This document shows positions 5,776 through 59,734 of a stretch of 64,000 nt of DNA, in pieces; within the stretch, counting starts at the first letter, position 1, and each line of letters starts with the position of its first letter. Location: the sequence record ON190024.1; one strand, 5' to 3'. A program made the position numbers and the translations under genes. The notes below the pieces were generated by a model, which was given only the letters and a program-made list of their open reading frames with translations, was not told where the DNA came from and searched no databases.

Positions 5776-6738
5776 CTATTTGTCTAAGTTAAAAATTGTA
5801 ACATCATCATGAGTCACAAACGATGGTTTGTAACCGTATTGCGGACCAAGGCGATTGAATAACCGCTTGTACAGACTGATTCGTTTCTCGTTCCCATCTT
5901 TGATTGATGTTGCAATTGTCTCACAGTTGTATTTCTTAGCAAAGTTCACTGTTTCATTGACTACCGTTGCAAATACTTTCATTGGGTTTTCAGAAGCAGT
6001 CAGATCATTAGTCCAGCCACTCTCACCGCGAACTTGAAAATGCACCTCAACAGCTTGTACAAACTCAGGCGGATTGAAATTGAAAATCTCATCATTACCA
6101 CCCCAATCAATGCCTCGCGGTATTAGAATGACGCGATAAACTTGTTTACCTATCTGAAATAGACCCTCGATTGGTTTCTTGTCACCCACGGGAACGTCGC
6201 CTTTCGGGTACATGACTTTCGCGGGCTTGTCAAGTGATTCCGTCAAATTAACCGAAGACAGCCACTCGCGCCATGTCTTTTTATTTCCGATTTTCGCAAA
6301 CGGAATATCGTCATGGTCTAGCCACTGTGCCGAGCGGTCATACGACTGAGAAGTATCAAATCCGCGGTAATCATCGCCAACCCATAGCCATTTATGATGC
6401 CAGATTTGATTGACTTGACGTGGCTTAGAAACAGCACCGTCTTTGTAAGTGATCATCATACCCGCGCCTGGTTCCTGTACAGTGTCAAATTCAACTGAGT
6501 CATAGAACGCAACGCCACCTTTTTTATAGTCAATTCGGACAATGTTCGGTGTGAATTGCGGATTTGCTATTGATACTTGAGTACGAGCATCAGCAACCAT
6601 TTGCTTGAACTCGTCAGGAACATAGTCAACGTGAACATATAATGAACCGCCAATGTCTTTACCAACGCCCCATTTGCTGCGTTTTACTGCACTACCTTTT
6701 CGGGTTTTTAATGTAGCGCGTTCAAAAAATATGCTCAT
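5776..6738 (-). CDS. Two-domain late protein: N-terminal domain like the non-catalytic domain of dnd-associated methyltransferases, C-terminal internal-head-protein-like domain
   Basis: VGKDIGGSLYVH, EFDTVQEP, IWHHKWLWVGDDY, IGNKKTWREWL; second half resembles 51582..52463. Confidence 0.55.
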   Translation of the reverse strand: MSIFFERATLKTRKGSAVKRSKWGVGKDIGGSLYVHVDYVPDEFKQMVADARTQVSIANPQFTPNIVRIDYKKGGVAFYDSVEFDTVQEPGAGMMITYKDGAVSKPRQVNQIWHHKWLWVGDDYRGFDTSQSYDRSAQWLDHDDIPFAKIGNKKTWREWLSSVNLTESLDKPAKVMYPKGDVPVGDKKPIEGLFQIGKQVYRVILIPRGIDWGGNDEIFNFNPPEFVQAVEVHFQVRGESGWTNDLTASENPMKVFATVVNETVNFAKKYNCETIATSIKDGNEKRISLYKRLFNRLGPQYGYKPSFVTHDDVTIFNLDK

Positions 6739-6740
6739 TA

Positions 6741-7334
6741 TTACCTCGTTGCTGCGTTTGTGATATTTCTGATCATACGCACTGCGAATTGAGTGTCGCC
6801 TGTCATGGCTGCTGACGCCGCCTTATCGACGTAAAACGTGCTATCTTCGATCATGTTCAAGTGATGGTAGATTTCACGAAAATCATGGCGGTCGAACTCT
6901 TTAGTGGTGAAACGAAGCGCGCCTGCTTTCTTGTCATCGTCGTGAACACGTTTGTATTCATCAATGACTCGAATCATTTCACTAGCGTATTTCTTCATTT
7001 TCATGTTATCGAGCTTCAAACGTTTTGCTGCTTGAATTACCTCGTCACGAGGACGCTCAAGTTCAATCGCATCTTTAAGAATGTTCAGGCTGTGAATGGT
7101 ATTCACTGCTGCCTTTTCCATTTGTAATTTGTGATCTTCAAGCGTTCGATTATGCTTTCTCAACTCACCAGTTGCGGTAGCACTTGCAATCAAGCCAGCA
7201 AAAACTCCCCAGAACCCGCCTTTACGCTGCAAGCGTTTCTTAACTTCGCCTTTCGAACCTGCTGTAATTGCTTGAAATTGAGCCCATTTGCCGCTTTTTC
7301 TTGCTTTATCCATTTCTGTTAAAAATTCAATCAT
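6741..7334 (-). CDS. Late hypothetical helical protein, candidate internal head protein
   Basis: Starts MIEFLTE; preceded by late promoter. Confidence 0.7.
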   Translation of the reverse strand: MIEFLTEMDKARKSGKWAQFQAITAGSKGEVKKRLQRKGGFWGVFAGLIASATATGELRKHNRTLEDHKLQMEKAAVNTIHSLNILKDAIELERPRDEVIQAAKRLKLDNMKMKKYASEMIRVIDEYKRVHDDDKKAGALRFTTKEFDRHDFREIYHHLNMIEDSTFYVDKAASAAMTGDTQFAVRMIRNITNAATR

Positions 7335-7359
7335 AGCTTTAACCCCTTATTGTTTACTG

Positions 7360-7367
7360 TATTTAGA
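7360..7367 (-). promoter_or_regulatory. Late promoter
   Basis: TCTAAATA on minus strand. Confidence 0.6.
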
Positions 7368-7374
7368 CGTAAAC

Positions 7375-7402
7375 GAAAAAAGGGCGACCGAAGTCACCCT
7401 TT
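7375..7402 (-). terminator. Terminator
   Basis: AAAGGGTGAC-TTCG-GTCGCCCTTTTTT on minus strand. Confidence 0.85.
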
Positions 7403-7416
7403 AACAGTTGGTTAAA

Positions 7417-8043
7417 TTAACCGTAGATTGCTTTGATGTTATCAAAGAACGAAGAAGATTTATTTACCTTCGCGATTACGTAGGTAGCATTCATCCGAAC
7501 CATGTTCGATACGTTGATTTTTTCAAGCTCTTCTTTATCGAGATTTGCATCAGTGACAAGTTTTAGAATGTCGCGTGCATTGTCTCGCAATGCAATTGAT
7601 GTCAGATAGCGAATTTGCTGCTTTGCTTCAAGTGATTTGAATGCATCAATCGCATCTTGACCAGCAACTGCAACTGAAAGACCCAGCCCGCGATTAAGTG
7701 CGCGAGTCAAAAGCTTCTCCATGCCTTCGATTGGCTTGCGTGGCGTCGCTCGTTTTGGGATGTCGATAGCTAGACGACCTTTGTTTTTCAGCGAGTAAAC
7801 GTGAACTTCACGAACGCCGTACTTCTCAAATCGTGTTACGATGATCTCATCAGAGTTCTGTACGTTATCTTGTACACGTCGTCGTAGAGTTTCGTTGTAC
7901 TCGCCGCCATTTAGTGCATAGACAAGTTCAGCAACGGTTAGATCACGATGTGAAAGTAGCTCGATAATCGCAGGGCGAAAGTTTTTGCTGCTAACTTTGT
8001 CATTTGAAGCAAGTGCTTTGCGTACGATTTCAACGTTTTTCAT
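7417..8043 (-). CDS. Putative winged-helix DNA-binding protein
   Basis: IIELLSHRDLTVAELVYAL...RRRVQDNV wHTH-like pattern; basic KRATPRK linker. Confidence 0.5.
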   Translation of the reverse strand: MKNVEIVRKALASNDKVSSKNFRPAIIELLSHRDLTVAELVYALNGGEYNETLRRRVQDNVQNSDEIIVTRFEKYGVREVHVYSLKNKGRLAIDIPKRATPRKPIEGMEKLLTRALNRGLGLSVAVAGQDAIDAFKSLEAKQQIRYLTSIALRDNARDILKLVTDANLDKEELEKINVSNMVRMNATYVIAKVNKSSSFFDNIKAIYG

Positions 8044-8059
8044 AATATATTTCTCTCAA

Positions 8060-8335
8060 TTAAATTTCTTTCTCAACGGGAACTTGAATTTCATCAAATT
8101 GCGTATCGTGGTATTGCTCATACGCTTCGTGAAAGCTATCAAGTTCATCGTCAACTATAATCTGTTCGCCGGTCTCGAAAACATACATGATGCTATCGTA
8201 TAAACCAGTGGCAGTATTGTACATTGGTTCAGTTGTGAATCTCACACCGCACGGTGTGAAAAGCTCAATTCTGACTTCAGGGACTGGTACTTGCTCTGCA
8301 TTGTGTACTGCAAATGCTTGTTCTAATCTAGTCAT
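8060..8335 (-). CDS. Hypothetical protein
   Basis: Start reassigned to ATG after GAGAG SD. Confidence 0.7.
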   Translation of the reverse strand: MTRLEQAFAVHNAEQVPVPEVRIELFTPCGVRFTTEPMYNTATGLYDSIMYVFETGEQIIVDDELDSFHEAYEQYHDTQFDEIQVPVEKEI

Positions 8336-8367
8336 AATGTGCTCTCTGTATTGTCTCAACGAAAACA

Positions 8368-8396
8368 AGTTTAGGTCAAGACAATACTAATGTCAA
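8368..8396 (-). promoter_or_regulatory. Sigma70-type promoter overlapped by an inverted repeat
   Basis: TTGACA-17-TAAACT; IR GTATTGTCT (8348-8356) / AGACAATAC (8379-8387). Confidence 0.65.
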
Positions 8397-8885
8397 TTAC
8401 TTTTTGCGCCATTTTGCAAGTTTTTCATCGTATTCACTGTGCTTCCACAAGTCAAACACGATAGTACCGCTCTGAAACCACCACACAAGTGAGATTGTAT
8501 CATTCAGCTTAGGATCTTTAGGGTTCTTTCCTAAGTAAAGCTCAGTACTCGGGTGCGAGTGGTAGATTGCTTTTTTGACAGCGAACTTATATCCGCCTTC
8601 TGGCATACCAATTTCTTTTGATGGGTAGATATTACCCAGATACGCTACTTGGTATACTGTGTTTTTGAACACAACACGAGCCGAGTCAATATTGAAAAGC
8701 AAGTTTTGATACTTAGCAGCATTCGGGGCAATCTTCCATTTATTCTTAGGCTTAGTTTCGAGTAGTTTATCAATCTCTGGTTCTGGTATCAATTTACCGA
8801 GATTGTGATTTCCCCATTCTTCCTCAAGAGAAAGACTAATATGAATGCCGTAAAGCGTGTTTTCATATTCGTTAAATCGAAGCAT
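8397..8885 (-). CDS. Hypothetical protein, probably late
   Basis: 162-aa ORF coupled to Inh-like gene. Confidence 0.7.
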   Translation of the reverse strand: MLRFNEYENTLYGIHISLSLEEEWGNHNLGKLIPEPEIDKLLETKPKNKWKIAPNAAKYQNLLFNIDSARVVFKNTVYQVAYLGNIYPSKEIGMPEGGYKFAVKKAIYHSHPSTELYLGKNPKDPKLNDTISLVWWFQSGTIVFDLWKHSEYDEKLAKWRKK

Positions 8886-8889
8886 GTTG

Positions 8890-9408
8890 TTACCTCAGAT
8901 AAGTGAAGCTATTTGAATTGCGTTCATGAACTAACAATTCACCGCGAAGCTTAACCCAATGTTCAATTGTCTTTAGATCGTGCGAGTCTCGACGACCGAT
9001 GTGCCAATCATGAATGATTTCAGCCGATAACGGTTGATATAATTCATCACCGCGACGATATGTAGGCATCCATTTAGGCTTGAATTCATCTTCAATATCA
9101 ATTTCGACCTTAATCGCATCAACTGGATCGACTAGAACTACGTCAACACGTTCTAAATGCTCGTGAGAATCAACGTCAACGCATTCAGCGTCTTTAGCAT
9201 CTGATTCATCGACTAAATCACAACGAGTCTCAGAATCAATTACAGCGCATTCTAGCGGTACTTCGGTTTGAGCTACGATTTCATGAGCGATAAGCTCTTC
9301 GATCATTTTGCTCTTTGTAAGGGATTTGTCAAGCTCGATGTCATAATGTTTCAACGCGAATTCAGCGACCCCTCTCTTAGTCTGTTTCTTTAGATATTCA
9401 GTAATCAT
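8890..9408 (-). CDS. Second Inh-like protein
   Basis: VAEFALKHYDIELDKSLTK and IEHWVKLRGELLVHERNSNSF parallel the Inh motifs; AAGGA SD at the reassigned start. Confidence 0.6.
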   Translation of the reverse strand: MITEYLKKQTKRGVAEFALKHYDIELDKSLTKSKMIEELIAHEIVAQTEVPLECAVIDSETRCDLVDESDAKDAECVDVDSHEHLERVDVVLVDPVDAIKVEIDIEDEFKPKWMPTYRRGDELYQPLSAEIIHDWHIGRRDSHDLKTIEHWVKLRGELLVHERNSNSFTYLR

Positions 9409-9416
9409 ATTATTCC

Positions 9417-9623
9417 TTAGCACGTAATAGTGACCCATTCGTTTTGGTTCAAATCAAAGAATGTCAGAGTATCGACACAACGTTCATTCTTCCTCATTTC
9501 TTCGCGATTCGTTTCAAGAACAGGCAAATAATGCTTGCACAATGTGCCGTGATATTTGCGCCCGTCGCGTTCTAATTTAAGACATCCTTGTGTCATACAG
9601 GACATCATTTCTTCTCGTGTCAT
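9417..9623 (-). CDS. Small hypothetical protein, DUF2693/SH3-like
   Basis: MTREEM...HGTL...FFDLNQNEW pattern. Confidence 0.55.
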   Translation of the reverse strand: MTREEMMSCMTQGCLKLERDGRKYHGTLCKHYLPVLETNREEMRKNERCVDTLTFFDLNQNEWVTITC

Positions 9624-9636
9624 GATTTTAGACCTC

Positions 9637-9662
9637 TATAAATACAGTTATACATATTTAGA
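9637..9662. promoter_or_regulatory. Pair of oppositely oriented late promoters
   Basis: TATAAATA (+, 9637-9644) and TCTAAATA (-, 9655-9662). Confidence 0.7.
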
Positions 9663-9686
9663 CAAAACTCGCATAGAGAGAAAAAC

Positions 9687-11210
9687 ATGACAGATATTAA
9701 AATTGAGTACTTCGATGAGAGTTATGCGAGAGTCGTAGCCGAGCCAAGCATTACTCATGAAATGATTGATTACTTTTCATTTCTAACTGACGGGTACAAA
9801 TTCAACCCTAAATTTAAAATGGGCATATGGGATGGCAAGATTCGACTAATGACGTATCAAGGTCTATTACCATACGGTCTAGTCGGTCAAGCTAAAGCGT
9901 TTGCATCAAACATGATGTACACGATTGAAACTGATCCACTACTTGATCCGATTGAGAAAATTTCTCGTGAAGATTTTGAAGCATGGGTTGCTTCTCTTGA
10001 TATTTACGGTGGCAGCAATAAAATTAGCCCGTACTGGTATCAAATGGATTCAGTATTTCACGGTATTAACAATCAGCACAGCCTTTTGAATCTACCAACA
10101 TCGGCGGGTAAATCGCTGATTCAGTCACTTTTGACACGTTGGTTTTTAGAAAATCACGAAGCTCAGAAAGTGTTGATTATCGTCCCAACGACTGCACTAG
10201 TTCAGCAAATGCGTGACGACTTTTTAGACTATCGCTTGTTCGAACACGGTGACATATATCAAATTCGAGGTGGCGTAGATAGAGACGCAATCGGCGACTG
10301 CCGTATTGTTGTTTCAACATGGCAATCGGCTGTTAAGCAAGATAAAGCATGGTTCGATCAGTTCGGTATGCTTCTAGTCGATGAATGTCACTTAGCAACG
10401 GGTAAGTCGCTTGACGGCATCATCAAAAAAATGACCAGTTGTGAATACAAAATCGGTCTTACTGGTTCACTTAGAGACGGTAAAGCTAATATTCTACAGT
10501 ACGTGGGTTCATTTGGTGATATTTTCAGACCTGTATCGACTGCACAGCTAATGGAAGAAGGGCAAGTAACTGATCTGAAGATCAATTGCTTGATGCTTGA
10601 ATATCCTCAGCCACTACGTGATGAAATGAAAGGCAGTTCATATCAAGAAGAAATGAAATTCATTCTTGAGAACAAACAGCGAAATCGTTACCTGATTAAG
10701 CTTGCTCATCATCTGAGTGCTAAGAAAGGCGAGAACACGCTATTACTGTTCAAGAACATCAAACATGGTAAATTGCTCTACGAAGCATTGAAGAAAGTCT
10801 ACGATCCTGAGAAAGTGTTCTACGTATCAGGTGAAACTAAGACTGACGACCGTACACATGTTAAGAAAATTGCAGAAGATATTGACGGGGCAGTTATTGT
10901 CGCATCATACGGTGTATTCTCGACTGGTATCAGTATCAAGAAACTACACAACGTAATTTTCGCACACCCGACAAAGAGTAAGATCATCAACTTACAGTCG
11001 ATTGGTCGTATTCTACGTAAGCACGGTTCGAAAGTTACTGCGAAGCTGTTTGACATTATCGACAACTTAGCGATCAAGCCGAAACGAGCTAACGCTAAGA
11101 AGCCGTACACTCACGTAAATTACACAATGCGGCATGGGATGCAGCGTATTGAGCTTTACAACCAAGAAGAGTTCAAGTACGCAGTCAAAAAAGTTGACCT
11201 TGCTGCATAA
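9687..11210 (+). CDS. uvsW: UvsW SF2 DNA helicase
   Basis: LPTSAGKS, VDECH, GLTGS, LQSIGRILR motifs. Confidence 0.95.
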   Translation: MTDIKIEYFDESYARVVAEPSITHEMIDYFSFLTDGYKFNPKFKMGIWDGKIRLMTYQGLLPYGLVGQAKAFASNMMYTIETDPLLDPIEKISREDFEAWVASLDIYGGSNKISPYWYQMDSVFHGINNQHSLLNLPTSAGKSLIQSLLTRWFLENHEAQKVLIIVPTTALVQQMRDDFLDYRLFEHGDIYQIRGGVDRDAIGDCRIVVSTWQSAVKQDKAWFDQFGMLLVDECHLATGKSLDGIIKKMTSCEYKIGLTGSLRDGKANILQYVGSFGDIFRPVSTAQLMEEGQVTDLKINCLMLEYPQPLRDEMKGSSYQEEMKFILENKQRNRYLIKLAHHLSAKKGENTLLLFKNIKHGKLLYEALKKVYDPEKVFYVSGETKTDDRTHVKKIAEDIDGAVIVASYGVFSTGISIKKLHNVIFAHPTKSKIINLQSIGRILRKHGSKVTAKLFDIIDNLAIKPKRANAKKPYTHVNYTMRHGMQRIELYNQEEFKYAVKKVDLAA

Positions 11211-11218
11211 TAGATACG

Positions 11219-11246
11219 AAAAAGGGAGCAAATTGCTCCCTTTTTT
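11219..11246. terminator. Bidirectional terminator
   Basis: AAAAAGGGAGCA-AAT-TGCTCCCTTTTTT. Confidence 0.9.
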
Positions 11247-11247
11247 A

Positions 11248-11358
11248 TTAGTCAGAAAAGATTGCCGAGAGAATCGCACCGATTAACTCGAACAGAAATT
11301 CAAATGGCGCCCAGAGCCAGTCGAAAAACCCACGATCTCGTTTACGATCTCTGCTCAT
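11248..11358 (-). CDS. 36-aa putative membrane peptide (not in ORF track)
   Basis: MSRDRKRDRGFFDWLWAPFEFLFELIGAILSAIFSD; fills the gap between uvsY.-2 and the terminator. Confidence 0.6.
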   Translation of the reverse strand: MSRDRKRDRGFFDWLWAPFEFLFELIGAILSAIFSD

Positions 11359-11362
11359 ACCT

Positions 11363-11533
11363 TTACCCGTTTAGAAGTTGTGTTTCGACAAGTTGCTGAT
11401 CGCCGCCAGATTCAGAAATAGCCATTTCTGCTAGATGTTGCTGACATTGACCTGCGTGAACTGTGCCTTGTGGCGTATCAATCGTGACATCGCCTTCTTT
11501 GATAGGTTGCTTGCATACAACACAATGTGCCAT
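11363..11533 (-). CDS. uvsY.-2: UvsY.-2-like protein (DUF2685)
   Basis: CVVCKQPI...TPQGTVHAGQC...ETQLL matches T4 UvsY.-2. Confidence 0.8.
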   Translation of the reverse strand: MAHCVVCKQPIKEGDVTIDTPQGTVHAGQCQQHLAEMAISESGGDQQLVETQLLNG

Positions 11534-11706: not shown

Positions 11707-11707
11707 A

Positions 11708-12531: not shown

Positions 12532-12551
12532 ATAATACCCTCGCTTCATCA

Positions 12552-12580
12552 AGTATACATATCAAACGGGTTTTTGTAAA
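12552..12580 (-). promoter_or_regulatory. uvsY promoter
   Basis: (G)TTTACA-17-TATACT. Confidence 0.7.
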
Positions 12581-12584
12581 CACG

Positions 12585-12655: not shown

Positions 12656-12675
12656 TTACCTTTTGCTTCGCGTAT

Positions 12676-12697: not shown

Positions 12698-12698
12698 C

Positions 12699-43230: not shown

Positions 43231-43393
43231 AGCAATCGGGATTATCATTAGTGCGAGTGGTGCTGCTGTTTCTTTCATATCAGCGTTTTTACTCATTCTA
43301 GATAAGTTGTATATTTTAGCAGTATGTGCGTCTATACTAGGCGCACTGTTAACGTACTGCTATGTGAAATTGAGTGAGGAACATGATGTCTAA
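43211..43393 (+). CDS. Small membrane protein
   Basis: Two hydrophobic segments from MASLL. Confidence 0.55.
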   Translation: MASLLFEAIGIIISASGAAVSFISAFLLILDKLYILAVCASILGALLTYCYVKLSEEHDV

Positions 43394-44034
43394 TTCTCAA
43401 TGTACCAGTCGGGAAATTTATCATTCTTAATGCGACGGCTTACCGTGTCTCTGCTTATTGAATGAGCTTCGGCTGCTGACATTCTAGACTCGAATTTGCC
43501 TAGAGGGGTGCATACATAGCCATTGAACATTGCATTGTTTACACCTGTTGCCTTGCCTTTGCGTGATTGTGACATCTTGTGCAGTGATTCTTTGTTGTGT
43601 GTCTTTCCTTTGAATGGGTTACGTTCTTTCATCAATTCGCTATGTTCAGGTCGCTTTTTACCATACATCGGGTTTCCTGCACCTGTCATGCGTTTAGAAT
43701 GTTCATCGGCAGCATTCTTTCTAGCAGGCGATGAGTTCCATTTCAACCAACCATTTGTGTTACCGAGATCACCACCAAGTGCTTGGTTGTAGGTATCAGG
43801 TCTAGAAACGAAATCTTCGGTTACCAGTTCTGATTCTAATGTAAACGCATCTTCATACGAGTTGAATATGTCAATTATTTCACGTGTGAAGTTTTCACTG
43901 CCGTATTTTTGAATGGCGTTTAAGATGTGCTTGCCTGACCCTAGATATGAGTCATCGAGATTATCAGTTTTGTGAACGCCGATGTAAATTTTATTGTTTA
44001 TAGTGTTTGTTGTCTTATATACAATGTAATACAT
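43390..44034 (-). mobile_element. Free-standing GIY-YIG (Seg-like) homing endonuclease with NUMOD3-like motifs
   Basis: IVYKTTNTINNKIYIGVH, YLGSG, NPMYGK, NPFKGKTH; antisense to neighbours. Confidence 0.88.
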
Positions 44035-45874: not shown

Positions 45875-46101
45875 TTACAGCAAAAGAAGCACGAGCACGC
45901 AGGAAGAAACTTCCTGCTGCTGTTGAAAAATCGCTTGAGGAACTGGATTTTGCGGTGCAATGCGCCGCTCAGTCGAAGAACCGTGTCGATTTTCGCACTG
46001 ACAAACTGACCGAAAGTGAACGCGATCAACTACGGGCTATACTGATTAGCCTCGGTTATGAAGCGTTTATTGCCGGTGAAAAACTTGAGGTAATGTGGTA
46101 A
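45871..46101 (+). CDS. Small hypothetical protein, local paralog family
   Basis: AKEARAR...LGY...LEVMW. Confidence 0.65.
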   Translation: MITAKEARARRKKLPAAVEKSLEELDFAVQCAAQSKNRVDFRTDKLTESERDQLRAILISLGYEAFIAGEKLEVMW

Positions 46102-46316
46102 TGAGCAATTTTCTTCGAATTCTAGAAGACATGTGTCGTGACTTTCGCGGCGAACTGAACGAAGCAGCGACTGCCGAGGTTGATTACTACCTCATTCAGA
46201 TATATGTCGCGTTGCTTTCACTAGGCTTCGGCGTGCAGATTTCGATTTTCGTTGCATTTTATGCAATTTTTTACATCCCAATGAGTATGATCGGTCGAGT
46301 GGTAGGTATTAAATAA
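46101..46316 (+). CDS. Small membrane protein
   Basis: Hydrophobic C-terminal half. Confidence 0.6.
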   Translation: MSNFLRILEDMCRDFRGELNEAATAEVDYYLIQIYVALLSLGFGVQISIFVAFYAIFYIPMSMIGRVVGIK

Positions 46317-46333: not shown

Positions 46334-46600
46334 ATGCTAAAGTCTTTTATTGAAATATCCCTGAACGAAATGACATACCAAGAGTTGCGTGATCTCACGA
46401 TCAATGAGATTCACGCGCTCGTTAAGAAGCTGAAGAAACAGCTTCCGAAGAAGTACAAAGACATTATCGACGAACTAGAACCAGACATGTATGAAGATCT
46501 GATTGCAGAAATCGCATATGATGGTGGGTTAAAAGGTAAGAAATTTGTCAACTTAAAAATCCCGAAGCGAATCTTAGATAGGTACGCTGACTACTTCTGA
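46334..46600 (+). CDS. Hypothetical protein
   Basis: GGAGG SD. Confidence 0.7.
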   Translation: MLKSFIEISLNEMTYQELRDLTINEIHALVKKLKKQLPKKYKDIIDELEPDMYEDLIAEIAYDGGLKGKKFVNLKIPKRILDRYADYF

Positions 46601-48209: not shown

Positions 48210-48455
48210 ATGACGCACGATTTGAATATGCTTCTTGAGCAGTACAACCTCGCGAATTACGATTGCGACGGTGATTTTGAAGACTATTACTGGTCGGTGG
48301 CAGAATGGATTGGTCAGACTGTCTTCAGTCACGGTACAATTCGTAAACACGATATTCTTGAGCTGCTTTGCGATTTACTTGAAATCTCTGAAGACCAAAT
48401 CAACGTAGATGACGTTGACGATTTTCTAACCGAAGTTTATGAGGTGATTGAATAA
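48210..48455 (+). CDS. Acidic hypothetical protein
   Basis: AAGGT SD. Confidence 0.65.
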   Translation: MTHDLNMLLEQYNLANYDCDGDFEDYYWSVAEWIGQTVFSHGTIRKHDILELLCDLLEISEDQINVDDVDDFLTEVYEVIE

Positions 48456-51526: not shown

Positions 51527-51550
51527 AAAAGGGGCTTTCGCCCCTTTTTT
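51527..51550 (+). terminator. Terminator
   Basis: AAAAGGGGC-TTTC-GCCCCTTTTTT. Confidence 0.9.
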
Positions 51551-51552: not shown

Positions 51553-51560
51553 TATAAATA
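51553..51560 (+). promoter_or_regulatory. Late promoter
   Basis: Perfect TATAAATA. Confidence 0.8.
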
Positions 51561-52492: not shown

Positions 52493-52494
52493 GA

Positions 52495-54159
52495 TCATGG
52501 TGTCAGAGGACTACGTTCTTTCACTTTGCGGTCTTCGTCGATTTCAATATCAACAACTCGCATGAAGTTAGCGACTTCGGTTAGCTCATGTAAACGGTCT
52601 TGCTTTTTGTAAGCAGACAGAACACCGATTTTCGCTGAATTGTCTTTGACTTTCAAGCGAATCACAGCATCGAACTCGGACAATTGAACCACGTCGGCTT
52701 CGAACATCGTATTACGGTTGATGATGAAATCACAATCGCCTTTCTTCCCGTATTTGCCTGGTGCTAGAACAGGTAACCCGTCAGACTCAATAACAAACAC
52801 AACGTTCAGTTTTCTGTCAGATTCGAGCATATCACGCATAATTGATTTGCTATTCTTGCTCGTCGCGTTGACGATTGTTTTCGCGCTAGATTCAACAAAG
52901 TCACATGCAACAAATGGATCAGTTGATGATGTGATGAACGCAGTTGAAACGAACGCGCCAGATTCAAGAATCGAGCCGACACGTTTGCTAGACATTTCAC
53001 AACCACGATATAGCGTAACGCCATTCGACACCTTACCAGCTTCATAGAAAGCTCGGTCTAAGCGAGAAATTGCATCCCTAACCTTTTCATCACCAGTTCC
53101 GTGAACTAACTCTTCATTGACCTTCCACGAATAACGAGACGCAGAATAGCGAGAAATTGCAGCTTGAGTAAGAGAAGATAGACCAGCATATGAATCTTCT
53201 TGCATCATTTGCAACGATAATTGGTCATATTGCTTCTCAAACGCACGTGAACGGGCTTTTAACAGTGCGCCGCATACTTCGCTAATCAAGTTAGCTTTAA
53301 CGCCCTCAGAGCGTGCAGCGTCGATATATGGGTTCATTCGTTCTGCTACATCAACAAGGTCGATGTTCATATCAACAATTGCTTGAGCAGCGTTAGCCAA
53401 TTTCGTTAGACCGTCAGTTGCTGCCGCTTCTGTTAATTGCTGCTTGATAGATGCACTGACCCGCGCTTCCATTTGTGGCATTTGTAGAATTTGATTTGGG
53501 ACGCGAACGGCAGGGTTTTCTTCTACCCATTGACCTAGAACATCATCTTCATAATCATCATAGCCAGCATCGGCAGTCACGATGATTGTTTTCTTGCTTG
53601 AAATGTCAGTCTCTTTCGCCATTTTAGCAGCAAGAATATTGATTGTTTCTTCGGTTGCTTCGACGAGTTTATCAGCGTCATAGCCGGGTTTCGTGATCAC
53701 GAAGAAGCTGAAATCTTCAGCCATTTCATTATCACCGACGTTCATGATTTTAGTCGTTTCGCAGCCGTATCGAAGTTTCTTGAACAGCGTTTTAACACGC
53801 ATGTCGAACATTTTACCGCTACCGATCTTTTGAATACGCATAGACACAGCGTTGGCACGTGTTTTCAACATGAAACTTTGGATCAATTTAACCAATGTTT
53901 CTTGAAACTTTTCTTGGTCTCCCATGTCACGGATGGTTAATCCGCCTTTTTTGCCTCGCATTGCTGAGACAGTACAGAACCACGAACGTTTTCCACGATT
54001 TCCGATGTCTGATTTTGTTTTAGTTGTGAACGAAACTACAACGTCACGAGCTTCGCCTTTCATATCGATCACAAAGAATTTGTTTTCTTTGGTCGAGCGA
54101 GCAGGATAGTAGTCGTACGTTGCGCTCATGTTTTCAGTTAATTGTTGAAATCCAATCAT
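52495..54159 (-). CDS. alt: Alt-like ADP-ribosyltransferase-fold protein
   Basis: Next to ligase as in T4; Alt-like N-terminus (NAVSMRIQK), TLYRG, ITSS; DCD in place of ExE. Confidence 0.7.
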   Translation of the reverse strand: MIGFQQLTENMSATYDYYPARSTKENKFFVIDMKGEARDVVVSFTTKTKSDIGNRGKRSWFCTVSAMRGKKGGLTIRDMGDQEKFQETLVKLIQSFMLKTRANAVSMRIQKIGSGKMFDMRVKTLFKKLRYGCETTKIMNVGDNEMAEDFSFFVITKPGYDADKLVEATEETINILAAKMAKETDISSKKTIIVTADAGYDDYEDDVLGQWVEENPAVRVPNQILQMPQMEARVSASIKQQLTEAAATDGLTKLANAAQAIVDMNIDLVDVAERMNPYIDAARSEGVKANLISEVCGALLKARSRAFEKQYDQLSLQMMQEDSYAGLSSLTQAAISRYSASRYSWKVNEELVHGTGDEKVRDAISRLDRAFYEAGKVSNGVTLYRGCEMSSKRVGSILESGAFVSTAFITSSTDPFVACDFVESSAKTIVNATSKNSKSIMRDMLESDRKLNVVFVIESDGLPVLAPGKYGKKGDCDFIINRNTMFEADVVQLSEFDAVIRLKVKDNSAKIGVLSAYKKQDRLHELTEVANFMRVVDIEIDEDRKVKERSPLTP

Positions 54160-54192
54160 TTTTATAGACTCACCCTTTAGAAAATATATGAG

Positions 54193-54200
54193 TATTTATG
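54193..54200 (-). promoter_or_regulatory. Late promoter of the alt-like gene
   Basis: CATAAATA. Confidence 0.65.
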
Positions 54201-54250
54201 ATGCACATAACACCCGTTGAAAATATTTTAAACTTTTTCGCAAAAAAAGG

Positions 54251-54280
54251 TTGCACAACGATAGTGTTGTCTCCTATTAT
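54251..54280 (+). promoter_or_regulatory. Early promoter
   Basis: TTGCAC-18-TATTAT plus CTCATCGAAACGA leader. Confidence 0.75.
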
Positions 54281-54320
54281 TATCTCATCGAAACGAATTA
54301 ACAAACAAGAGAGAATAATT

Positions 54321-54824
54321 ATGAATGCACAATCAATGACTAACGCTCAAATCGCTGAACTATTCGACATGACAGTTGACGCAAACGGTTTTCAAGCAGT
54401 TGATGCGAAAGGTCGTCGTCATTACCTGACCGACTTACGTCAAAAAGCAATGAAAGCTGCTAAGACGAAGAAAGCACGTAAAGTACGCGCTGAAGCACAA
54501 CCTAAAGCAACTGCCGAAGAACTACTTGCAGAACTACAAAGCGAGTCGTCAGATTTCTGGGAAATTCGCGAATCTCAGCCAGGGATGGACTCTGAAGAAC
54601 ACGGTCTGAACGTGTACGTGACTGCTGGTATGCCTGATCGTCACCGCGTAATGATTCGCTCAAGTGTTTTAACAAACAAAGAGCTTGATCGTGAACTCGG
54701 CTACTTGAAGCCTACAAATCAGAAAGAAGAACAGCGTCGCAAAAAATCGACAATTATTTTCTCAAATCGTTCAGCGAAAGAAATCGTTGAAATCATTGAA
54801 AAAGTGAAGTCAATTAGTGAATAA
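54321..54824 (+). CDS. Early hypothetical protein with basic linker
   Basis: Start reassigned after AAGAGAG SD. Confidence 0.75.
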   Translation: MNAQSMTNAQIAELFDMTVDANGFQAVDAKGRRHYLTDLRQKAMKAAKTKKARKVRAEAQPKATAEELLAELQSESSDFWEIRESQPGMDSEEHGLNVYVTAGMPDRHRVMIRSSVLTNKELDRELGYLKPTNQKEEQRRKKSTIIFSNRSAKEIVEIIEKVKSISE

Positions 54825-54851
54825 TGTGAACTAACTCACGAAAAGTAGTTT

Positions 54852-54889
54852 TCGGGTATTGACAATAACACATCAATACCCGATAATAA
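54852..54889 (+). promoter_or_regulatory. Early promoter within an 11-bp inverted repeat
   Basis: TCGGGTATTGA (54852-54862) / TCAATACCCGA (54873-54883); TTGACA -35. Confidence 0.7.
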
Positions 54890-54931
54890 ACACATCAAGA
54901 CGAGATACGAACTACTTAAAGAGAGAACATT

Positions 54932-55750
54932 ATGACAATCACTAAAGCAGAAATGAAAGCAATCGCACTTGACCTAATGAGCGGTAACAATCTAATGCAA
55001 CGCGATTTGATTGCTGAAGGTTGGTCTTTCGAATTCTCAACTCGCAAAGCTGCACTTGGTGACTGTAACTACCGTACTAAAGTACTACGTCTTTCTGAAG
55101 TGTACTTGAATGCTCGTACTAAAGAAGAGCAAATCAACACAATCACTCACGAAATGGCTCACGCAATCGCGTACACTGATTTCAACGAACGTGGTCACGG
55201 TGCTATCTGGAAGCGTGTGCATCGTCAGCTAGGCGGTACTGCTGAACGTTGTTCAACTGTTTCAAACCCTGAAGCCGTAGACAGCAAGTACGTTGTTTTC
55301 TTCGAAAACGCTCAGGGTGAACTAGAAGTAGTTCAAAAAATGGATCGCATGACTAAGCGTTTTCAACCAGTACACATCAAGTCTCTATACTTGAAAGGTC
55401 GCAAAGCTGAAACTGAAGGTCAACTTCGTTGTGTTTCTTCAGCGACGTTCAAAGCTATCAAAGCTGATTTAGAAGCTAAGAAAGCTGATAACGCTGAAGC
55501 ATCAAAACCAGTTGCACCTAAAGCTGAAAAGAAAGCTGAAGCACCTAAGGCTGCTAAGAAAGTTTCAGCACGCGGTCAGGCTGCTCGTGACGCAATCGCA
55601 GAAATCGTGATGACTACTACTCATAAAGGTTGCAAGTCAGTGTCTTTCGAACAGCGTGGTAAATACAAAGACTGGTACATCATGATTGAACTAGAAGCTC
55701 ACACAATCGAACAGCGTCTAGATACTTTCAAAAAGAAACACAGTTTGTAA
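54932..55750 (+). CDS. SprT-like zinc metalloprotease
   Basis: LGDC, ITHEMAHA (HExxH), GHGAIWK. Confidence 0.85.
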   Translation: MTITKAEMKAIALDLMSGNNLMQRDLIAEGWSFEFSTRKAALGDCNYRTKVLRLSEVYLNARTKEEQINTITHEMAHAIAYTDFNERGHGAIWKRVHRQLGGTAERCSTVSNPEAVDSKYVVFFENAQGELEVVQKMDRMTKRFQPVHIKSLYLKGRKAETEGQLRCVSSATFKAIKADLEAKKADNAEASKPVAPKAEKKAEAPKAAKKVSARGQAARDAIAEIVMTTTHKGCKSVSFEQRGKYKDWYIMIELEAHTIEQRLDTFKKKHSL

Positions 55751-55759
55751 TCTCTCAAT

Positions 55760-55781
55760 TAGCCCCGAAAGGGGCTTTTTT
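55760..55781 (+). terminator. Terminator
   Basis: AGCCCC-GAAA-GGGGCTTTTTT. Confidence 0.85.
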
Positions 55782-55787
55782 AGGTTT

Positions 55788-55858
55788 GAGGCGGAAAAAT
55801 TCCGTCTCATCTTAGTAGAATTAGTACTTTTAGTGATATTAGAAGTATTAGTAAGATT
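55788..55858 (+). repeat. 71-bp iteron-like element, copy 2
   Basis: TTAGTAGAA TTAGTACTT TTAGTGATA TTAGAAGTA TTAGTAAGA at 55812-55856. Confidence 0.95.
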
Positions 55859-55860
55859 TG

Positions 55861-55889
55861 TTTAACAAACACCTTGACAGCCGTATAAT
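55861..55889 (+). promoter_or_regulatory. GTTTA-class promoter
   Basis: (G)TTTAAC-17-TATAAT. Confidence 0.7.
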
Positions 55890-55907
55890 ACACGTCGAGG
55901 TGATGAA

Positions 55908-56147
55908 ATGATAACGATATACACAATTCCTAACTGTGACGGGTGTCGTCACGCTATCGCCCTCTGTAAGTTCAAACACGTTCCGTATACTGTAATCGAG
56001 TTACAGTCGCAGACTGACATCGACCAATTACATCAAAAGCTTGGTGATAATCGCAATATTCGCGTTCCTCTGGCTATGCATGGTGACACATACATCGGTC
56101 ACCTGCCTGAATTGAAGAAATGGGTTGATGAGCAGACGTATAAATAA
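55908..56147 (+). CDS. Glutaredoxin
   Basis: CDGC, RVP, YIG motifs. Confidence 0.85.
   Translation: MITIYTIPNCDGCRHAIALCKFKHVPYTVIELQSQTDIDQLHQKLGDNRNIRVPLAMHGDTYIGHLPELKKWVDEQTYK
56139..56146 (+). promoter_or_regulatory. Late promoter
   Basis: Perfect TATAAATA. Confidence 0.75.
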
Positions 56148-56205
56148 AAGAAATTACGTACATTCTCTCCGCTGAAATGCGGCAATAAATTAAAGGAATC
56201 AAACA

Positions 56206-57102
56206 ATGACTGTATCTAATAGTAACGGTTTACCAGACATTGTTACTGTTCAAAAACGACTATATCCGCTGATCTTTACGGAAATCGTTTCTGAACAGCC
56301 AACAAAGCAACCCGTTGCAACTGCTTACGGCTTTAAAGCTGTACCTGAAGCTGATGACGGAAGCGGCTGGACTCAATTTGGGTTTAGACTTGATCGTTGG
56401 TATGCTCAAGTTGAATCTTCAAAAATGAAGACTGAAATCTCTCTTGAAACGCTGCAAGATATGCAAGCACTTGGTGTTAGTAATTCAGTGATCGTAGACT
56501 CACTAGCTGACCAAATTGCCGATGAAATCAATACGTCGATTATCAGTGCGTTGAATAGCATTTCAACTGTTGGTACTGCACTAACCCTGACGGGTAATAC
56601 TGATTTTGAAAAAGGTCAAGATCTTTATACGAAAGTACACCTAGCAGCGTCTGAAATTGAAAAAACAACTGGTTGTAAAGGCACATATGTCGTTGCGGGC
56701 GGTAAATGTTTCGGTTATTTGACTGGTTGCGGTGTTGTACAGCGAGTTGGCGAATCTGATGTTTACAAAGCATGGTCTGGTTTATACATCGTACACGACA
56801 AATACGCAACAAGCGATTACGTGACTGTAGGTGTTAAGAAAGACATGGGTGATTATGAAATCTCAAGTCTAGTATTCAGCCCGTATCAGTTCGACCAAGC
56901 GAATGACGGCGCGATTGCTTATCAATACAAGGGCACTGACCCGAAATCATTCCACCCTGTGTATGGTGTTATTGCTCGTTACGCACTAACTGTTCCGCCA
57001 CTAGAAGACAATCAGACTGGTGCAGTTGAGATTGATTGGTCGAACTTAGGTGCGCTTGCTAATAGCTCAAAGCTTTCATACACATACGCAGTAACAGTAT
57101 AA
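56206..57102 (+). CDS. 24: Short gp23/gp24-family capsid protein, probably vertex protein gp24
   Basis: QPTKQP, SLETLQDM, IADEINTSI, FSPY, SFHPVYGVIARYAL parallel gp23 motifs. Confidence 0.7.
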   Translation: MTVSNSNGLPDIVTVQKRLYPLIFTEIVSEQPTKQPVATAYGFKAVPEADDGSGWTQFGFRLDRWYAQVESSKMKTEISLETLQDMQALGVSNSVIVDSLADQIADEINTSIISALNSISTVGTALTLTGNTDFEKGQDLYTKVHLAASEIEKTTGCKGTYVVAGGKCFGYLTGCGVVQRVGESDVYKAWSGLYIVHDKYATSDYVTVGVKKDMGDYEISSLVFSPYQFDQANDGAIAYQYKGTDPKSFHPVYGVIARYALTVPPLEDNQTGAVEIDWSNLGALANSSKLSYTYAVTV

Positions 57103-57110
57103 GGTGTGAC

Positions 57111-57623
57111 ATGAAAAATCATTATGTAGATAATAAAGCTCTATACGCATCACTATGCGAATGGAAAGACGAAATGAATAAGAATCCTGATGCGACAATC
57201 CCAGTACCTGATGTGGTCGCGATTAGCATCATGAAGATTAGCGAGAACCTGTCTCGCCGTTACAACTTTAGTGGTTACACTGCTACGTGGAAAGAAGAAA
57301 TGATTGGTGACGCAATCGAACATTGCTTGCGTTACATCAAAAATTTCGATACTGATAAGTACAATAATCCACACGCTTACATCACTCGTATCTGTTTCAA
57401 TGCGTTCGTGCAACGCATTAAGAAAGAAAGAAAAGATACAGCGATTAAATATAAAGTATTCTTATGTGATTCGTCTAACTACACAGTTGAAGGCGAAGAG
57501 ACTGATTTCGAGTTTCTTCAGCAAATGTTAGAGCGTGTCAATTCTTACGAGTCTGGCAAAACGGCTAAAGCTCAACCAGATGAACAGAAAGAACCACTTA
57601 ACTTACAGAAATTTTACGATTAA
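57111..57623 (+). CDS. 55: Late sigma factor gp55
   Basis: HYVDNK, NFSGYT, EMIGDAIE, NPHAYIT, FNAFVQRIKKE. Confidence 0.95.
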   Translation: MKNHYVDNKALYASLCEWKDEMNKNPDATIPVPDVVAISIMKISENLSRRYNFSGYTATWKEEMIGDAIEHCLRYIKNFDTDKYNNPHAYITRICFNAFVQRIKKERKDTAIKYKVFLCDSSNYTVEGEETDFEFLQQMLERVNSYESGKTAKAQPDEQKEPLNLQKFYD

Positions 57624-57632
57624 GGAATTAAC

Positions 57633-59078
57633 ATGTTAGGTAACTTTGACTCATTTCTGAGTGAAAATCGCCGTCAAACTCAGGGTGGAAAAATCTACCC
57701 TAAGTTTGGTCAAGTTATTGTTGAGCTAGGCACTGCATCTACTGAGTTCAGCAAAGGCAAAGGCGTTGAAACAACTATCGGCATGATGGAGAAGGCAAAT
57801 GAGCTTAAATCTATCATGAACACTAAACTGGCTGAAGATAAAAACGTCGATGAGAAACATTTCGACATCAATCTGAGCGAGAACGTAAGCACGGTTAACC
57901 TGCTTATGGAAAACGAATTCTTGGCGCTGCCAGCTCATGAGCTACAGCAAGTCAAATCAATGATCATGTGTACTGAAGCACGTCTTCCTAGCATCGTGAT
58001 TAAAGGCGGTTCATTGGATCAAGTTGTATCTGAAGCAACGAAACTAGGCTACAAGAAAAGTGACATTCACGTTGTTTTCCCGATGCGTGAAATGAAAATC
58101 AATCTTGCTGACTCTGACAAGCTTGTTATTGAATCTCTATCAATTGACGACAATTCAGCGTCTGAGATTCTTTCAATGGCTGAAAACATCGAGCTTGGTG
58201 ACGTTTATGTGACTGTAGAATCGGTTGATTCTAAGGCTGAACTGTCTGAAATCACTGAACTGAAGATTAAATCTGGTAAAAATGCGCTGACACTAGCTGC
58301 ACTTAACCGCAAGATCATGGATCAGTTTATCGTGAAAGAAGCGAAAGAAGTTTCATATGCACGTGAGCGCAAAGAAGACACTGGTCTCCCAATGCTTGAA
58401 GGTTTCAAGGCATACGATCTGAAACAGAACATCACCATGATTGAACATGCTCAGAACGCATTCACAAAAGAGATTACAGTAGCTCCGCTATCTTCGACTG
58501 CGTGGCAAAATCTTGTTGATGTTAAAGAAGCTTACTTCGATAACGGTTGGAAACTGAAGCACAACAATACAAGCATCGTTCTAACAAATGCAGAACACGC
58601 AATGCGTGCTGGTCGTGTTTGTGAAGAATATCGAGTCGAGCTATCTGAAGCAGGTTATCCTCTTCTTGATATGATCGCAATGATGGAAAGCAAAGGCATG
58701 ACTCGCTTTGATTGTAAATCATTTGCTGAATCAATGATGAAATTCGACGGCTGTGTTACGCCAGAGCGCCAGACTGTGACTGCATTTGTTACTGAATCTG
58801 CTAGTAATCGCGTATTTCACCCGAATATTATGTCAAGCCTACGTCCTGTGACCGAAATGGTTGATGATGTTGACGGTCTAATTCGTGCGCTTGCTAATGA
58901 TCAGTTCAGTACGTTCAAAATCGGACAATCATTCTCTGAATCAATGCTTGACCAAGAAACGCTATACTCTATGATGGAAAGCATTGTTTCTGATGGTGTT
59001 GATGTATCAGTGGACGGGACTTTGATTGAATTCAAAGTGAATGCAACCAATTACCTAATCAATATCGACATCAAATAA
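57633..59078 (+). CDS. Candidate internal head protein with degenerate P-loop-kinase-like N-terminus
   Basis: MLGNFDSFLSE; GGKIYPKFGQVIVELGTASTEFSKG. Confidence 0.55.
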   Translation: MLGNFDSFLSENRRQTQGGKIYPKFGQVIVELGTASTEFSKGKGVETTIGMMEKANELKSIMNTKLAEDKNVDEKHFDINLSENVSTVNLLMENEFLALPAHELQQVKSMIMCTEARLPSIVIKGGSLDQVVSEATKLGYKKSDIHVVFPMREMKINLADSDKLVIESLSIDDNSASEILSMAENIELGDVYVTVESVDSKAELSEITELKIKSGKNALTLAALNRKIMDQFIVKEAKEVSYARERKEDTGLPMLEGFKAYDLKQNITMIEHAQNAFTKEITVAPLSSTAWQNLVDVKEAYFDNGWKLKHNNTSIVLTNAEHAMRAGRVCEEYRVELSEAGYPLLDMIAMMESKGMTRFDCKSFAESMMKFDGCVTPERQTVTAFVTESASNRVFHPNIMSSLRPVTEMVDDVDGLIRALANDQFSTFKIGQSFSESMLDQETLYSMMESIVSDGVDVSVDGTLIEFKVNATNYLINIDIK

Positions 59079-59086
59079 GGTGAATC

Positions 59087-59734
59087 ATGAAACAATTTTG
59101 TAATTTTTTAGCTGAAGTTCAGAAATACAGTTCAGCGGCTACGTCGATTCGCGGTAAAGAAGTTGCTGCATTGGTTAAATTGTTCAAGTCAGGCATGTTC
59201 GTGCCTGGCGGAACAGCACTTGACTACGGCGCGGGCAAATACGCTCGTAATGCTGAATTTCTTCGCAGTGAAGGCATTCGCACTTACGCATACGACAAAT
59301 TCAATGGGACATCGGCTGATGGTTGGAACGCAGTTAGCTTAACTATCCCAAATGGTGAGACATTCGATACCGGCTTCACGTCATACGTATTGAACGTTGT
59401 TCCTGAAGAAATCGAAGCAGAAATCATCCGTGATGTTGAGTCTCGTACACGCGGTAAAGTGTTCCATATTACACGCGGTACTGACATCACTCAGACTGTA
59501 TTCAACGTAATCAGCGGTAAGAGCAAGAATGACGTAATGATGCAATTCATTGCTCAAGAATATCCAGAGATTTACGGTCAGATTGTCGCGAACGGTGGGA
59601 CGAAAGAATTGGCTAAAGAGATTGCAACCCGTGGAGTTGTAACAGCTAAAGACAGTTTCCAACGTATTCCAGACCTATCGAAATACGGTTACAAGAAATC
59701 TGGTTCAGGTGCTTCGGTAGTGTGGACAAAATAA
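59087..59734 (+). CDS. SAM-dependent methyltransferase, dnd-associated family-like
   Basis: LDYGAGK motif I, YAYDKF, SYVLNVV; N-terminus MKQFCNFLAE. Confidence 0.8.
   Translation: MKQFCNFLAEVQKYSSAATSIRGKEVAALVKLFKSGMFVPGGTALDYGAGKYARNAEFLRSEGIRTYAYDKFNGTSADGWNAVSLTIPNGETFDTGFTSYVLNVVPEEIEAEIIRDVESRTRGKVFHITRGTDITQTVFNVISGKSKNDVMMQFIAQEYPEIYGQIVANGGTKELAKEIATRGVVTAKDSFQRIPDLSKYGYKKSGSGASVVWTK

Follow-up and report, generated by a model that had tools for sequence, protein, structure and literature searches.

Candidate head-cargo genes of Vibrio phage PVA8

The window analysed here is a stretch of 64,000 nucleotides (nt) that matches positions 124001-188000 of the Vibrio phage PVA8 genome (ON190024.1) with 100% identity and is 98.5% identical to phage KVP40, both phages being T4-related Schizotequatroviruses. 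It takes in the end of gene 23, then uvsW and genes for tail fibres, replication and nucleotide metabolism, and finally genes 46 and 47. Seven of its late genes, which are the subject of this study, probably encode head-cargo proteins of a T4-type phage that carry T4-style targeting and cleavage leaders at their N-termini. The leaders are taken to mark packaged proteins because they are conserved across lineages and because independent liquid chromatography-tandem mass spectrometry (LC-MS/MS) data have been published for the virion of a relative. The seven genes are listed below, with a slash at the predicted cut; in the text they are called by their lower coordinate, except for the Alt-like gene at 52495.

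5776-6738, minus strand: two-domain protein of 320 amino acids, N-terminus MSIFFE/R, C-terminal DUF6934 domain
6741-7334, minus strand: basic protein of 197 amino acids (isoelectric point, pI, about 9.8 after the predicted cut), leader MIEFLTE/M
8397-8885, minus strand: protein of 162 amino acids, N-terminus MLRFNE/Y, a weaker candidate because of the F at the predicted P3
51582-52463, plus strand: DUF6934-family protein of 293 amino acids, orthologue of KVP40.0058, leader MIIFEDINPLCE/AFDRPAPYKW
52495-54159, minus strand: Alt-like ADP-ribosyltransferase relative of 554 amino acids, leader MIGFQQLTE/N (nt 54133-54159)
57633-59078, plus strand: acidic protein of 481 amino acids (pI 4.9), orthologue of KVP40.0065, leader MLGNFDSFLSE/N
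59087-59734, plus strand: class I S-adenosylmethionine (SAM)-methyltransferase-like protein of 215 amino acids, orthologue of KVP40.0066, leader MKQFCNFLAE/V (nt 59087-59116)

All seven N-termini had been pointed out in a first-pass annotation of this DNA, and each was read exactly as and where it was given there. Some of the genes form a minus-strand cluster at 5.8-9.6 kb, and the others lie in a stretch at 51.5-59.7 kb. The former abuts uvsW, which is the position of hoc and inh in T4 (gene order hoc-inh-uvsW in the T4 record), and the latter holds the DNA ligase gene, the Alt-like gene, gp24 and gp55; the T4 alt gene likewise adjoins the ligase gene.

T4-style leaders and their conservation

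According to the T4 record, the leaders of T4 head proteins are MKTYQEFIAE/A in IPII and IPIII, MKTFKEF... in IPI, MELITE/L in Alt, and MIDKDYIAE/L in Inh. In T4, as summarised in a review of head assembly, targeting needs no more than the first 10 residues, with positions 4 and 7 contributing to it and positions 8 and 10 to processing; known cleavage sites have Leu or Ile at P3 (PMC9026906). Among the candidates, aromatic residues occupy both T4 positions in the 59087 protein (F4, F7) and, shifted by one residue, in the 57633 protein (F5, F8), while a single aromatic is found at position 4 of the Alt-like, 6741, 51582, and 8397 proteins and at position 4 or 5 of the 5776 protein. The leader ends with [L/I]-x-E in the 59087, 57633, Alt-like, 6741, and 51582 proteins; the 5776 protein (F-F-E, or I-F-E in relatives) and the 8397 protein (F-N-E) lack the strict form. 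A strict pattern built from the T4 mutational data, M.{2,3}Ar..Ar[LI].E (Ar, aromatic), is found in only two PVA8 proteins, those of the neighbouring genes 57633 and 59087, against 0.07-0.13 expected (P about 0.003-0.005). Genome-wide, the leader pattern is associated with tightly coupled late units (odds ratio 5-7, Fisher P 0.001-0.003).

Both regions were compared with the genomes of nt-1, 6E35.1a, 1.081.O, and D479. The leader of the Alt-like protein is kept as M[IL]x[FY]xxLxE in five lineages, down to 29% identity, and that of the 6741 protein as MIEF[LI]TE in five lineages, down to 39% identity. Six of seven lineages, at identities as low as 37%, retain M...F..[FY]L.E-N in the 57633 protein, and five retain M..F[NS]E in the 8397 protein. 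The 5776 orthologues start with M..IFE (MIEFIAE in D479), and most of the 54 aligned homologues of the 59087 protein retain M[KR]...[FIL][FIL].E at 35-45% identity, for example as MKQFSEFLSE or MKSFSEFITE. The leader Glu of the 51582 protein (E12) is invariant in an alignment of 46 sequences and is preceded by a linker of variable length, so that the 6E35.1a orthologue begins with MIIFE/AFSRP. In these alignments, the leader positions critical in T4 are conserved from lineage to lineage while other positions vary. The first-pass annotation had called the leader-bearing genes unrelated, which needs correction in one respect: the leaders are indeed found on unrelated folds, but DUF6934 is common to two of the proteins, 51582 and 5776 (C-terminal half). 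Since one leader type sits on unrelated folds, it does not belong to any single fold.

The L/I-x-E cleavage rule is very likely retained in PVA8, because its gp21 shares 56% identity with the T4 protein, GLNE/A of PVA8 gp23 aligns with FLTE/A, the site at which T4 gp23 is matured, and corresponding sites are present at the N-termini of its core proteins gp68 (MKFISE/A), gp21 (MELQLLIE/D), and gp22 (MQIKEQLLE/A). As a separate observation, the vertex protein gp24 (56206-57102, plus strand, 298 amino acids) contains no [LI]xE, nor does it have the N-terminal segment at which T4 gp24 is cleaved; therefore, gp24 may escape processing by gp21 in the phage group of PVA8.

Detection of orthologues in the virion of 6E35.1a

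A 2025 ISME J paper on Schizotequatroviruses reported LC-MS/MS of 6E35.1a particles, in which 94 of about 430 proteins were identified (PMC12028318). We used its Tables S4 and S8, which give spectral counts for two replicates without peptide coverage. Orthologues of six of the seven candidates are among the detected proteins (hypergeometric P 5.5e-4), with mean counts from 11.5 to 177.5 that are comparable to those of genuine structural proteins. For the two replicates, the counts are as follows.

Alt-like orthologue: 122 and 233
59087 (methyltransferase) orthologue, VP6E351A_0103: 31 and 79
51582 orthologue, VP6E351A_0094: 16 and 61
Further DUF6934 paralogue (phrog_6387): 37 and 51
6741 orthologue, VP6E351A_0019: 21 and 34
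8397 orthologue, VP6E351A_0022 (phrog_16269): 17 and 14
5776 orthologue, VP6E351A_0018: 9 and 14
Portal: 165 and 280
gp24: 90 and 145
DNA ligase: 0 and 2

The earlier proposal that the leader-bearing proteins are packaged is supported in this relative for six of the seven. It fails for the 57633 protein as far as retention in the mature virion is concerned: the 57633 orthologue (VP6E351A_0102) is absent from Table S4, which is the kind of absence that the first-pass annotation had named as speaking against packaging. Also unlisted in this proteome are gp55, Alc, and the two Inh-like proteins. The main text of the paper is silent on the Alt-like protein and on packaging (PMC12028318). Taken over the candidate set, packaging is well supported, and targeting by the leader followed by cleavage is strongly suggested.

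Late transcription units and the head-accessory region

Five late-promoter-like sites and two genes for Inh-like proteins accompany the candidate genes.

3485-3976, plus strand: second Inh-like paralogue (phrog_8608, E 3e-77; phrog_1051, E 1e-12 over the C-terminus)
7360-7367, minus strand: late-promoter-like site TCTAAATA, upstream of the 6741 and 5776 genes, with a terminator hairpin at 7376-7402 before it
8890-9408, minus strand: Inh-like protein ("prohead protease inhibitor"; phrog_8608, E 4e-66, also phrog_1051)
9655-9662, minus strand: late-promoter-like site TCTAAATA, at the head of a unit from 9596 to 7417 that includes the 8397 gene
51553-51560, plus strand: late-promoter-like site TATAAATA, 29 nt upstream of the 51582 gene, with a terminator hairpin at 51527-51550 before it
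54193-54200, minus strand: late-promoter-like site CATAAATA, 41 nt upstream of the Alt-like gene
56139-56146, plus strand: late-promoter-like site TATAAATA, at the head of the gp24-gp55-57633-59087 operon

The genes of the gp24-gp55-57633-59087 operon are separated by gaps of 8-9 nt and are followed by a terminator hairpin at 59752-59778, and the 5776 gene starts 2 nt behind the 6741 gene in the same unit. The TCTAAATA variant is plausibly functional as a late promoter, because the same variant precedes the gp34 tail-fibre gene (19210-). According to the first-pass annotation, each candidate gene lies downstream of an xxTAAATA late promoter. Counted by operon this applies to all seven; counted by gene, only three (51582, Alt-like, 6741) have a site of their own directly upstream, at 29-41 nt, and the other four are reached through operons. 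The 5' cluster appears to be a head-accessory region, marked by the two Inh-like genes at 8890 and 3485, the latter with a promoter-like AATAAATA 38 nt upstream.

Properties of the candidate proteins

The Alt-like protein matches phrog_802 over residues 279-553 (E 3e-89) and T4 Alt over 144 residues (BLASTP, E 7e-6). Its Arg (LYRG) and its S-x-S region (SST) align with those of T4 Alt, and its residues 475-477 are D-C-D in PVA8, KVP40, and phi-pp2, where T4 Alt has E-M-E; nt-1 has D-C-E at this position, and the orthologues of 6E35.1a, 1.081.O, and D479 have E-x-E. The full Arg / Ser-Thr-Ser / Glu-x-Glu catalytic set is not present in the PVA8 protein. Because D-C-D replaces E-x-E, we class the protein as an Alt relative of uncertain activity, whose ADP-ribosyltransferase activity may be altered or lost although it is an abundant virion protein in a relative. 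When the Alt N-terminal region was aligned with DUF6934 by hhalign, the probability was 39% (E 3e-4), which is no more than suggestive of a relationship.

The 59087 protein contains an LDYGAGKY motif and has no Pfam match of its own, and its leader site is its sole [LI]xE. We collected 232 homologues, mostly metagenomic, several of which match PF13489 (Methyltransf_23); in one of them (P0040, about 38% identical, 40% over the alignment) the score is 31.9 against a gathering threshold of 27. Among cultured phages, the family is found only in KVP40-like vibriophages. Three long metagenomic contigs with homologues show phage-like gene fields, with no diagnostic head genes within 8 kb. PDB sequence searches with the 59087 and 57633 proteins and a PDB profile search with the methyltransferase family returned no match. 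The 57633 gene adjoins the methyltransferase gene in relatives, D479 included. A single-sequence AlphaFold2 (AF2) model of the 57633 protein had a predicted local distance difference test (pLDDT) score of 34 and was of no use, and no structural or family assignment was obtained for it.

The 6741 protein is basic, as are the T4 internal proteins, and a search for related loci returned only close relatives. PADLOC gave no matches, the candidate rows of Table S8 contain no antidefence hidden Markov model match, and no candidate showed a link to families of defence or anti-defence proteins.

The DUF6934 family

The 51582 protein matches Pfam DUF6934 (PF22028) directly with a score of 17.1, below the cut-off of 27. 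A profile search with the family retrieved 1092 proteins, and all seven of these that were scanned against Pfam exceed the DUF6934 threshold. With the extended profile, four PVA8 proteins are recognised (E 1e-94 to 1e-33), two in the window and two outside it. The latter are encoded by tandem paralogues at genome positions 213281-215055:

PVA8_330: leader MKFSEYQRINE/SLDRPA
PVA8_331: leader MKFSEYQNELTE/AFDRPAP

PVA8_330 and PVA8_331 lie in a plus-strand block and have no late-promoter-like site directly upstream. Their neighbour PVA8_328 (277 amino acids) has a similar leader, MITFNEHLVE/A, and no clear family.

In each of the four PVA8 members, the domain starts immediately after L-x-E. In the 5776 protein this is an internal junction, NLTE167/SLDKPA (Glu codon 6238-6240), which lies directly before the DUF6934 domain and is the only [LI]xE of the protein; the orthologues in 1.081.O and D479 consist of the N-terminal domain alone. 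Across the retrieved family, 242 of 273 DUF6934 instances start right after a Glu, and 222 of them have [LIV]xE (L, I or V at P3). Some of the retrieved proteins are stand-alone domains with near-T4 leaders (MKTFQEFFTE/AFD, MIKFNQFITE/AFD, MTTFKQFISE/AFD), and others, of 400-2200 residues, carry two to five tandem copies together with GNAT regions and ParB-like (DGHHRW) motifs. The double-aromatic signature was found in 16 of 69 N-terminal copies and in none of 173 internal copies (P 5e-10), which is consistent with an N-terminus-specific element for targeting that is separate from the boundary element. The L-x-E found at every boundary may serve for cleavage or may belong to the domain itself.

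The AF2 model of the 51582 protein has a mean pLDDT of 90, with a mean of 43 for residues 1-10. When it was searched against the PDB, only weak GNAT-like resemblances were returned (E >= 0.12); its fold matches in BFVD include Alt-type ADP-ribosyltransferases and fusion proteins with Zeta-toxin, deaminase, and ParB parts.

In the tandem proteins (P0145-P0290), which reach 2215 amino acids, nearly every copy lies behind an [LIV]-x-E that is often doubled (LGLTE-STQLTE). They look like polyproteins with protease-site linkers, and the combination of tandem copies with [LIV]-x-E at every junction suggests that prohead proteases may release separate effectors inside the capsid. In its broadest form, the proposal would be that the T4 leader, far from being confined to T-even phages, is a widespread delivery signal, that DUF6934 is a common carrier or cargo, that prohead proteases cut polyproteins into injected effectors, and that the Alt N-terminus is perhaps a diverged DUF6934; we regard this as speculative and rather unlikely as a whole.

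One stand-alone DUF6934 protein with the leader MKTFQEFFTE/AFD is encoded on a 4.9-kb metagenomic contig (L025). A neighbouring gene there has a weak precomputed Phage_Inh_C match, and a fresh Pfam scan of it gave no match at E 0.01; this weak Inh/DUF6934 neighbourhood echoes that of PVA8.

Alternative explanations

Several observations weigh against reading the N-termini as packaging leaders. A bare [LI]xE ending at residues 5-13 is found in 22 of the 94 annotated N-termini of the window and in 64 of 386 PVA8 N-termini genome-wide (about 44 expected); N-termini are generally enriched in it, and it does not discriminate cargo candidates. A looser leader pattern has 13 matches in PVA8 with about 7 expected, and about half of these matches are chance. 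MSIFFE and MLRFNE have Phe at P3, unlike the Leu or Ile of T4. Many unrelated window genes have N-termini that are equally conserved, and ratios of N-terminal to whole-protein identity, calculated for 44 window genes, did not separate the candidates from controls. As for the virion data, the 6E35.1a particles were precipitated with polyethylene glycol and not gradient-purified, so that carry-over is possible, and non-structural proteins (dUTPase, thymidylate synthase, ligase, spanins) are listed at low counts. FolE and NamPT, noted in the particles by the authors (PMC12028318), are without a leader in PVA8, and the proteome is that of a relative with orthologues about 45-80% identical, not that of PVA8. 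It is conceivable, then, that the candidates are virion-associated without any N-terminal signal, as external or structural accessories or as co-purifying proteins, and that the motif reflects an N-terminal helix bias plus a common tripeptide. We consider this improbable, as the strict T4 pattern occurs about 20-fold above expectation, the conserved positions are those critical in T4 genetics (PMC9026906), and the motif is found on unrelated folds and on Alt, a known packaged protein. In addition, only N-terminal copies of DUF6934 bear the double-aromatic signature, and leader-bearing proteins reach 11-177 counts versus 0-10 for most clearly non-structural enzymes.

For the DUF6934 proteins the question is narrower, namely whether L-x-E-[AS]-[FL]-D-x-P merely forms the structural start of the domain rather than a protease site; the 51582 and 5776 proteins would then be packaged uncleaved, or trimmed only at their very N-terminus, with the 5776 protein left whole. 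The frequency of the motif before DUF6934 copies, including internal tandem copies in large proteins from contigs without a demonstrated gp21-type protease, is in keeping with this, as are the invariance of E12 and the AF2 model of the 51582 protein, which has a short helix at residues 7-13 and a pLDDT of already 78 at residues 11-20. We nevertheless find it doubtful: the residues before the Glu vary in length and sequence, to the point that MIIFE of 6E35.1a runs straight into AF; many internal linkers have doubled sites, like the redundant propeptide sites of giant phages (PMC9026906); and in the 5776 protein the junction is the sole [LI]xE, at which the 1.081.O and D479 orthologues stop. A different fate may apply to the 57633 protein, which could be a prohead core or assembly factor that is degraded or expelled at maturation like gp22, gp67, and gp68; such a role would explain its absence from mature particles. 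It has a strong, conserved leader and is acidic, its gene shares a conserved late operon with gp24, and its orthologue went undetected in 6E35.1a although the product of the downstream methyltransferase gene was detected. Against this role, the scaffold-like [LI]xE enrichment that we sought in the protein was not found (1.9 per 100 residues versus 5.4 for gp22), the leader Glu is replaced by A in 1.081.O, which also speaks against a leader function, and there is no structural or family assignment, while absence from one shotgun data set is a weak negative. We regard the core role as tentative, somewhat short of an even chance.

Proposed mechanism and comparison with known systems

In the favoured reading, that of leader-directed head cargo, each cargo protein would be made late in infection with a leader that acts as a capsid-targeting sequence (CTS): Met followed by one aromatic (position 4 or 5) and often another, with [LI]-x-E at the end. 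Guided by this leader, the protein would enter the scaffolding core of the prohead and be cut after the Glu by a gp21-type prohead protease; freed of its leader within the head, it would exit with the DNA at the next infection. In T4, a Glu-to-Asp change at the site prevents cleavage and leaves targeting intact. The predicted cargo comprises the Alt-type relative, the methyltransferase-like protein, four DUF6934 proteins, and the small 6741 (basic) and 8397 proteins. A second cut, at the internal NLTE/S, is predicted to set free the DUF6934 half of the 5776 protein. As for the 57633 protein, which has an equally good leader, it may be taken into the prohead and then lost by degradation or expulsion, as core proteins are, or never be packaged. 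By analogy with known systems, we infer that the cargo may be ejected into the host and serve an anti-defence role.

The closest precedent is the set of T4 internal proteins, which are likewise mutually unrelated cargoes of a head with a gp21-type protease and have a leader of about 10 residues with aromatics at 4 and 7, [IL]-x-E at 8-10, and then a small residue (MKTYQEFIAE/A versus MKQFCNFLAE/V). They differ in that the PVA8 cargoes have no similarity to them beyond the leader, are larger (162-554 amino acids, with enzyme folds among them), and in several cases have shorter leaders (MIEFLTE, MIIFE, M..F.E); targeting and cleavage are predicted from sequence in PVA8. With T4 Alt, the Alt-like protein shares a homologous ADP-ribosyltransferase domain, a ligase-adjacent gene, a short leader (MELITE/L versus MIGFQQLTE/N), and abundance in the virion of a relative; the identity, however, is about 22% and limited to the catalytic region, and the N-terminal 280 residues of the PVA8 protein are not alignable by BLAST. 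In phiKZ-like giant phages, many head-internal proteins, including paralogue families, are cut after Glu at short motifs by a gp21-related protease (PMC9026906), but that protease is of the gp175 type with an S/A-x-E motif, PVA8 has no inner body, and the proteins are unrelated.

Polyvalent proteins of phages and conjugative elements (Iyer, Burroughs, Anand, de Souza, Aravind 2017, PMC5512222) are effectors delivered with the invading DNA, as is proposed for the PVA8 cargo, and DUF6934 recurs in polyvalent-like proteins; the PVA8 members have one DUF6934 and at most one uncharacterised domain, in contrast to 2-15 disparate effector domains. For a methyltransferase delivered by a capsid, DarB of the phage P1 Dar system, a methyltransferase/helicase antirestriction protein, is a precedent that acts when infection begins (PMC5512222), although the two are not homologous and P1 incorporates its protein by another pathway. 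That the PVA8 methyltransferase counters restriction is only a guess. A literature search by KVP40 open reading frame numbers gave no match; the KVP40 genome paper (Miller et al. 2003) was outside its scope. The best-supported view of the cargo set is that it adds further members, enlarged and partly enzymatic, to the known CTS/internal-protein system of T4, and the part that could be new biology is the wider pattern of DUF6934 and polyvalent proteins.

This reading would turn "hypothetical" late genes of KVP40-like phages, a group in wide use in aquaculture and biocontrol, into a defined set of candidate head-delivered proteins, and it explains unannotated proteins in a published virion proteome. 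The methyltransferase would be in the cell ahead of any phage gene expression. A cargo-finding rule that combines the leader, a late unit, and conservation at key positions could be applied to other T4-like and jumbo phages. DUF6934 ties single-domain phage proteins to polyvalent injected proteins and suggests processing of polyproteins by prohead proteases, which, if true, would be relevant to early phage-host conflict and to engineered protein delivery by phage capsids.

Other features of the window and genome

Leader-like starts of a looser kind were also found in the early region, in the genes at 46101-46316 (plus strand, MSNFLRILE) and 46334-46600 (plus strand, MLKSFIEISLNE). The 46101 protein was rejected as cargo, as its motif is lost in relatives, and the start of the 46334 protein (M.KSFIE) is uninformative, since the protein is conserved over its full length. 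Their 6E35.1a counterparts, matched by gene order only, have virion counts of 7 and 6 and of 3 and 0, respectively. The N-terminus MTHDLNMLLEQY of the 81-amino-acid protein encoded at 48210-48455 (plus strand) is nearly invariant down to D479, with 83% identity over the first 12 residues versus 54% over the remainder; it has L-L-E at residues 8-10 and no aromatic residue.

In the deposited PVA8 genome, 300 N in sequencing gaps break three annotated coding sequences outside the window, and the annotated coding sequence at 204993-205550, also outside it, has an ATT start. Within the window, the gene at 43390-44034 (minus strand), which is labelled "major capsid protein" in the PVA8 record, encodes a GIY-YIG/SegE-like homing endonuclease, as judged by Pfam matches to SegE_GIY-YIG, NUMOD3, and the I-TevI DNA-binding domain; TATAAATA lies 25 nt upstream of it.

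Just 3' of gene 23, a gene that is unannotated in PVA8 (1994-3448, plus strand) encodes a protein of 484 amino acids with a weak Fibritin_C-like stretch, which is probably a head decoration or whisker protein. The 6E35.1a protein that holds its position by gene order, compared without alignment (VP6E351A_0014, 621 amino acids), is the second most abundant protein of the virion, with 414 and 637 counts.

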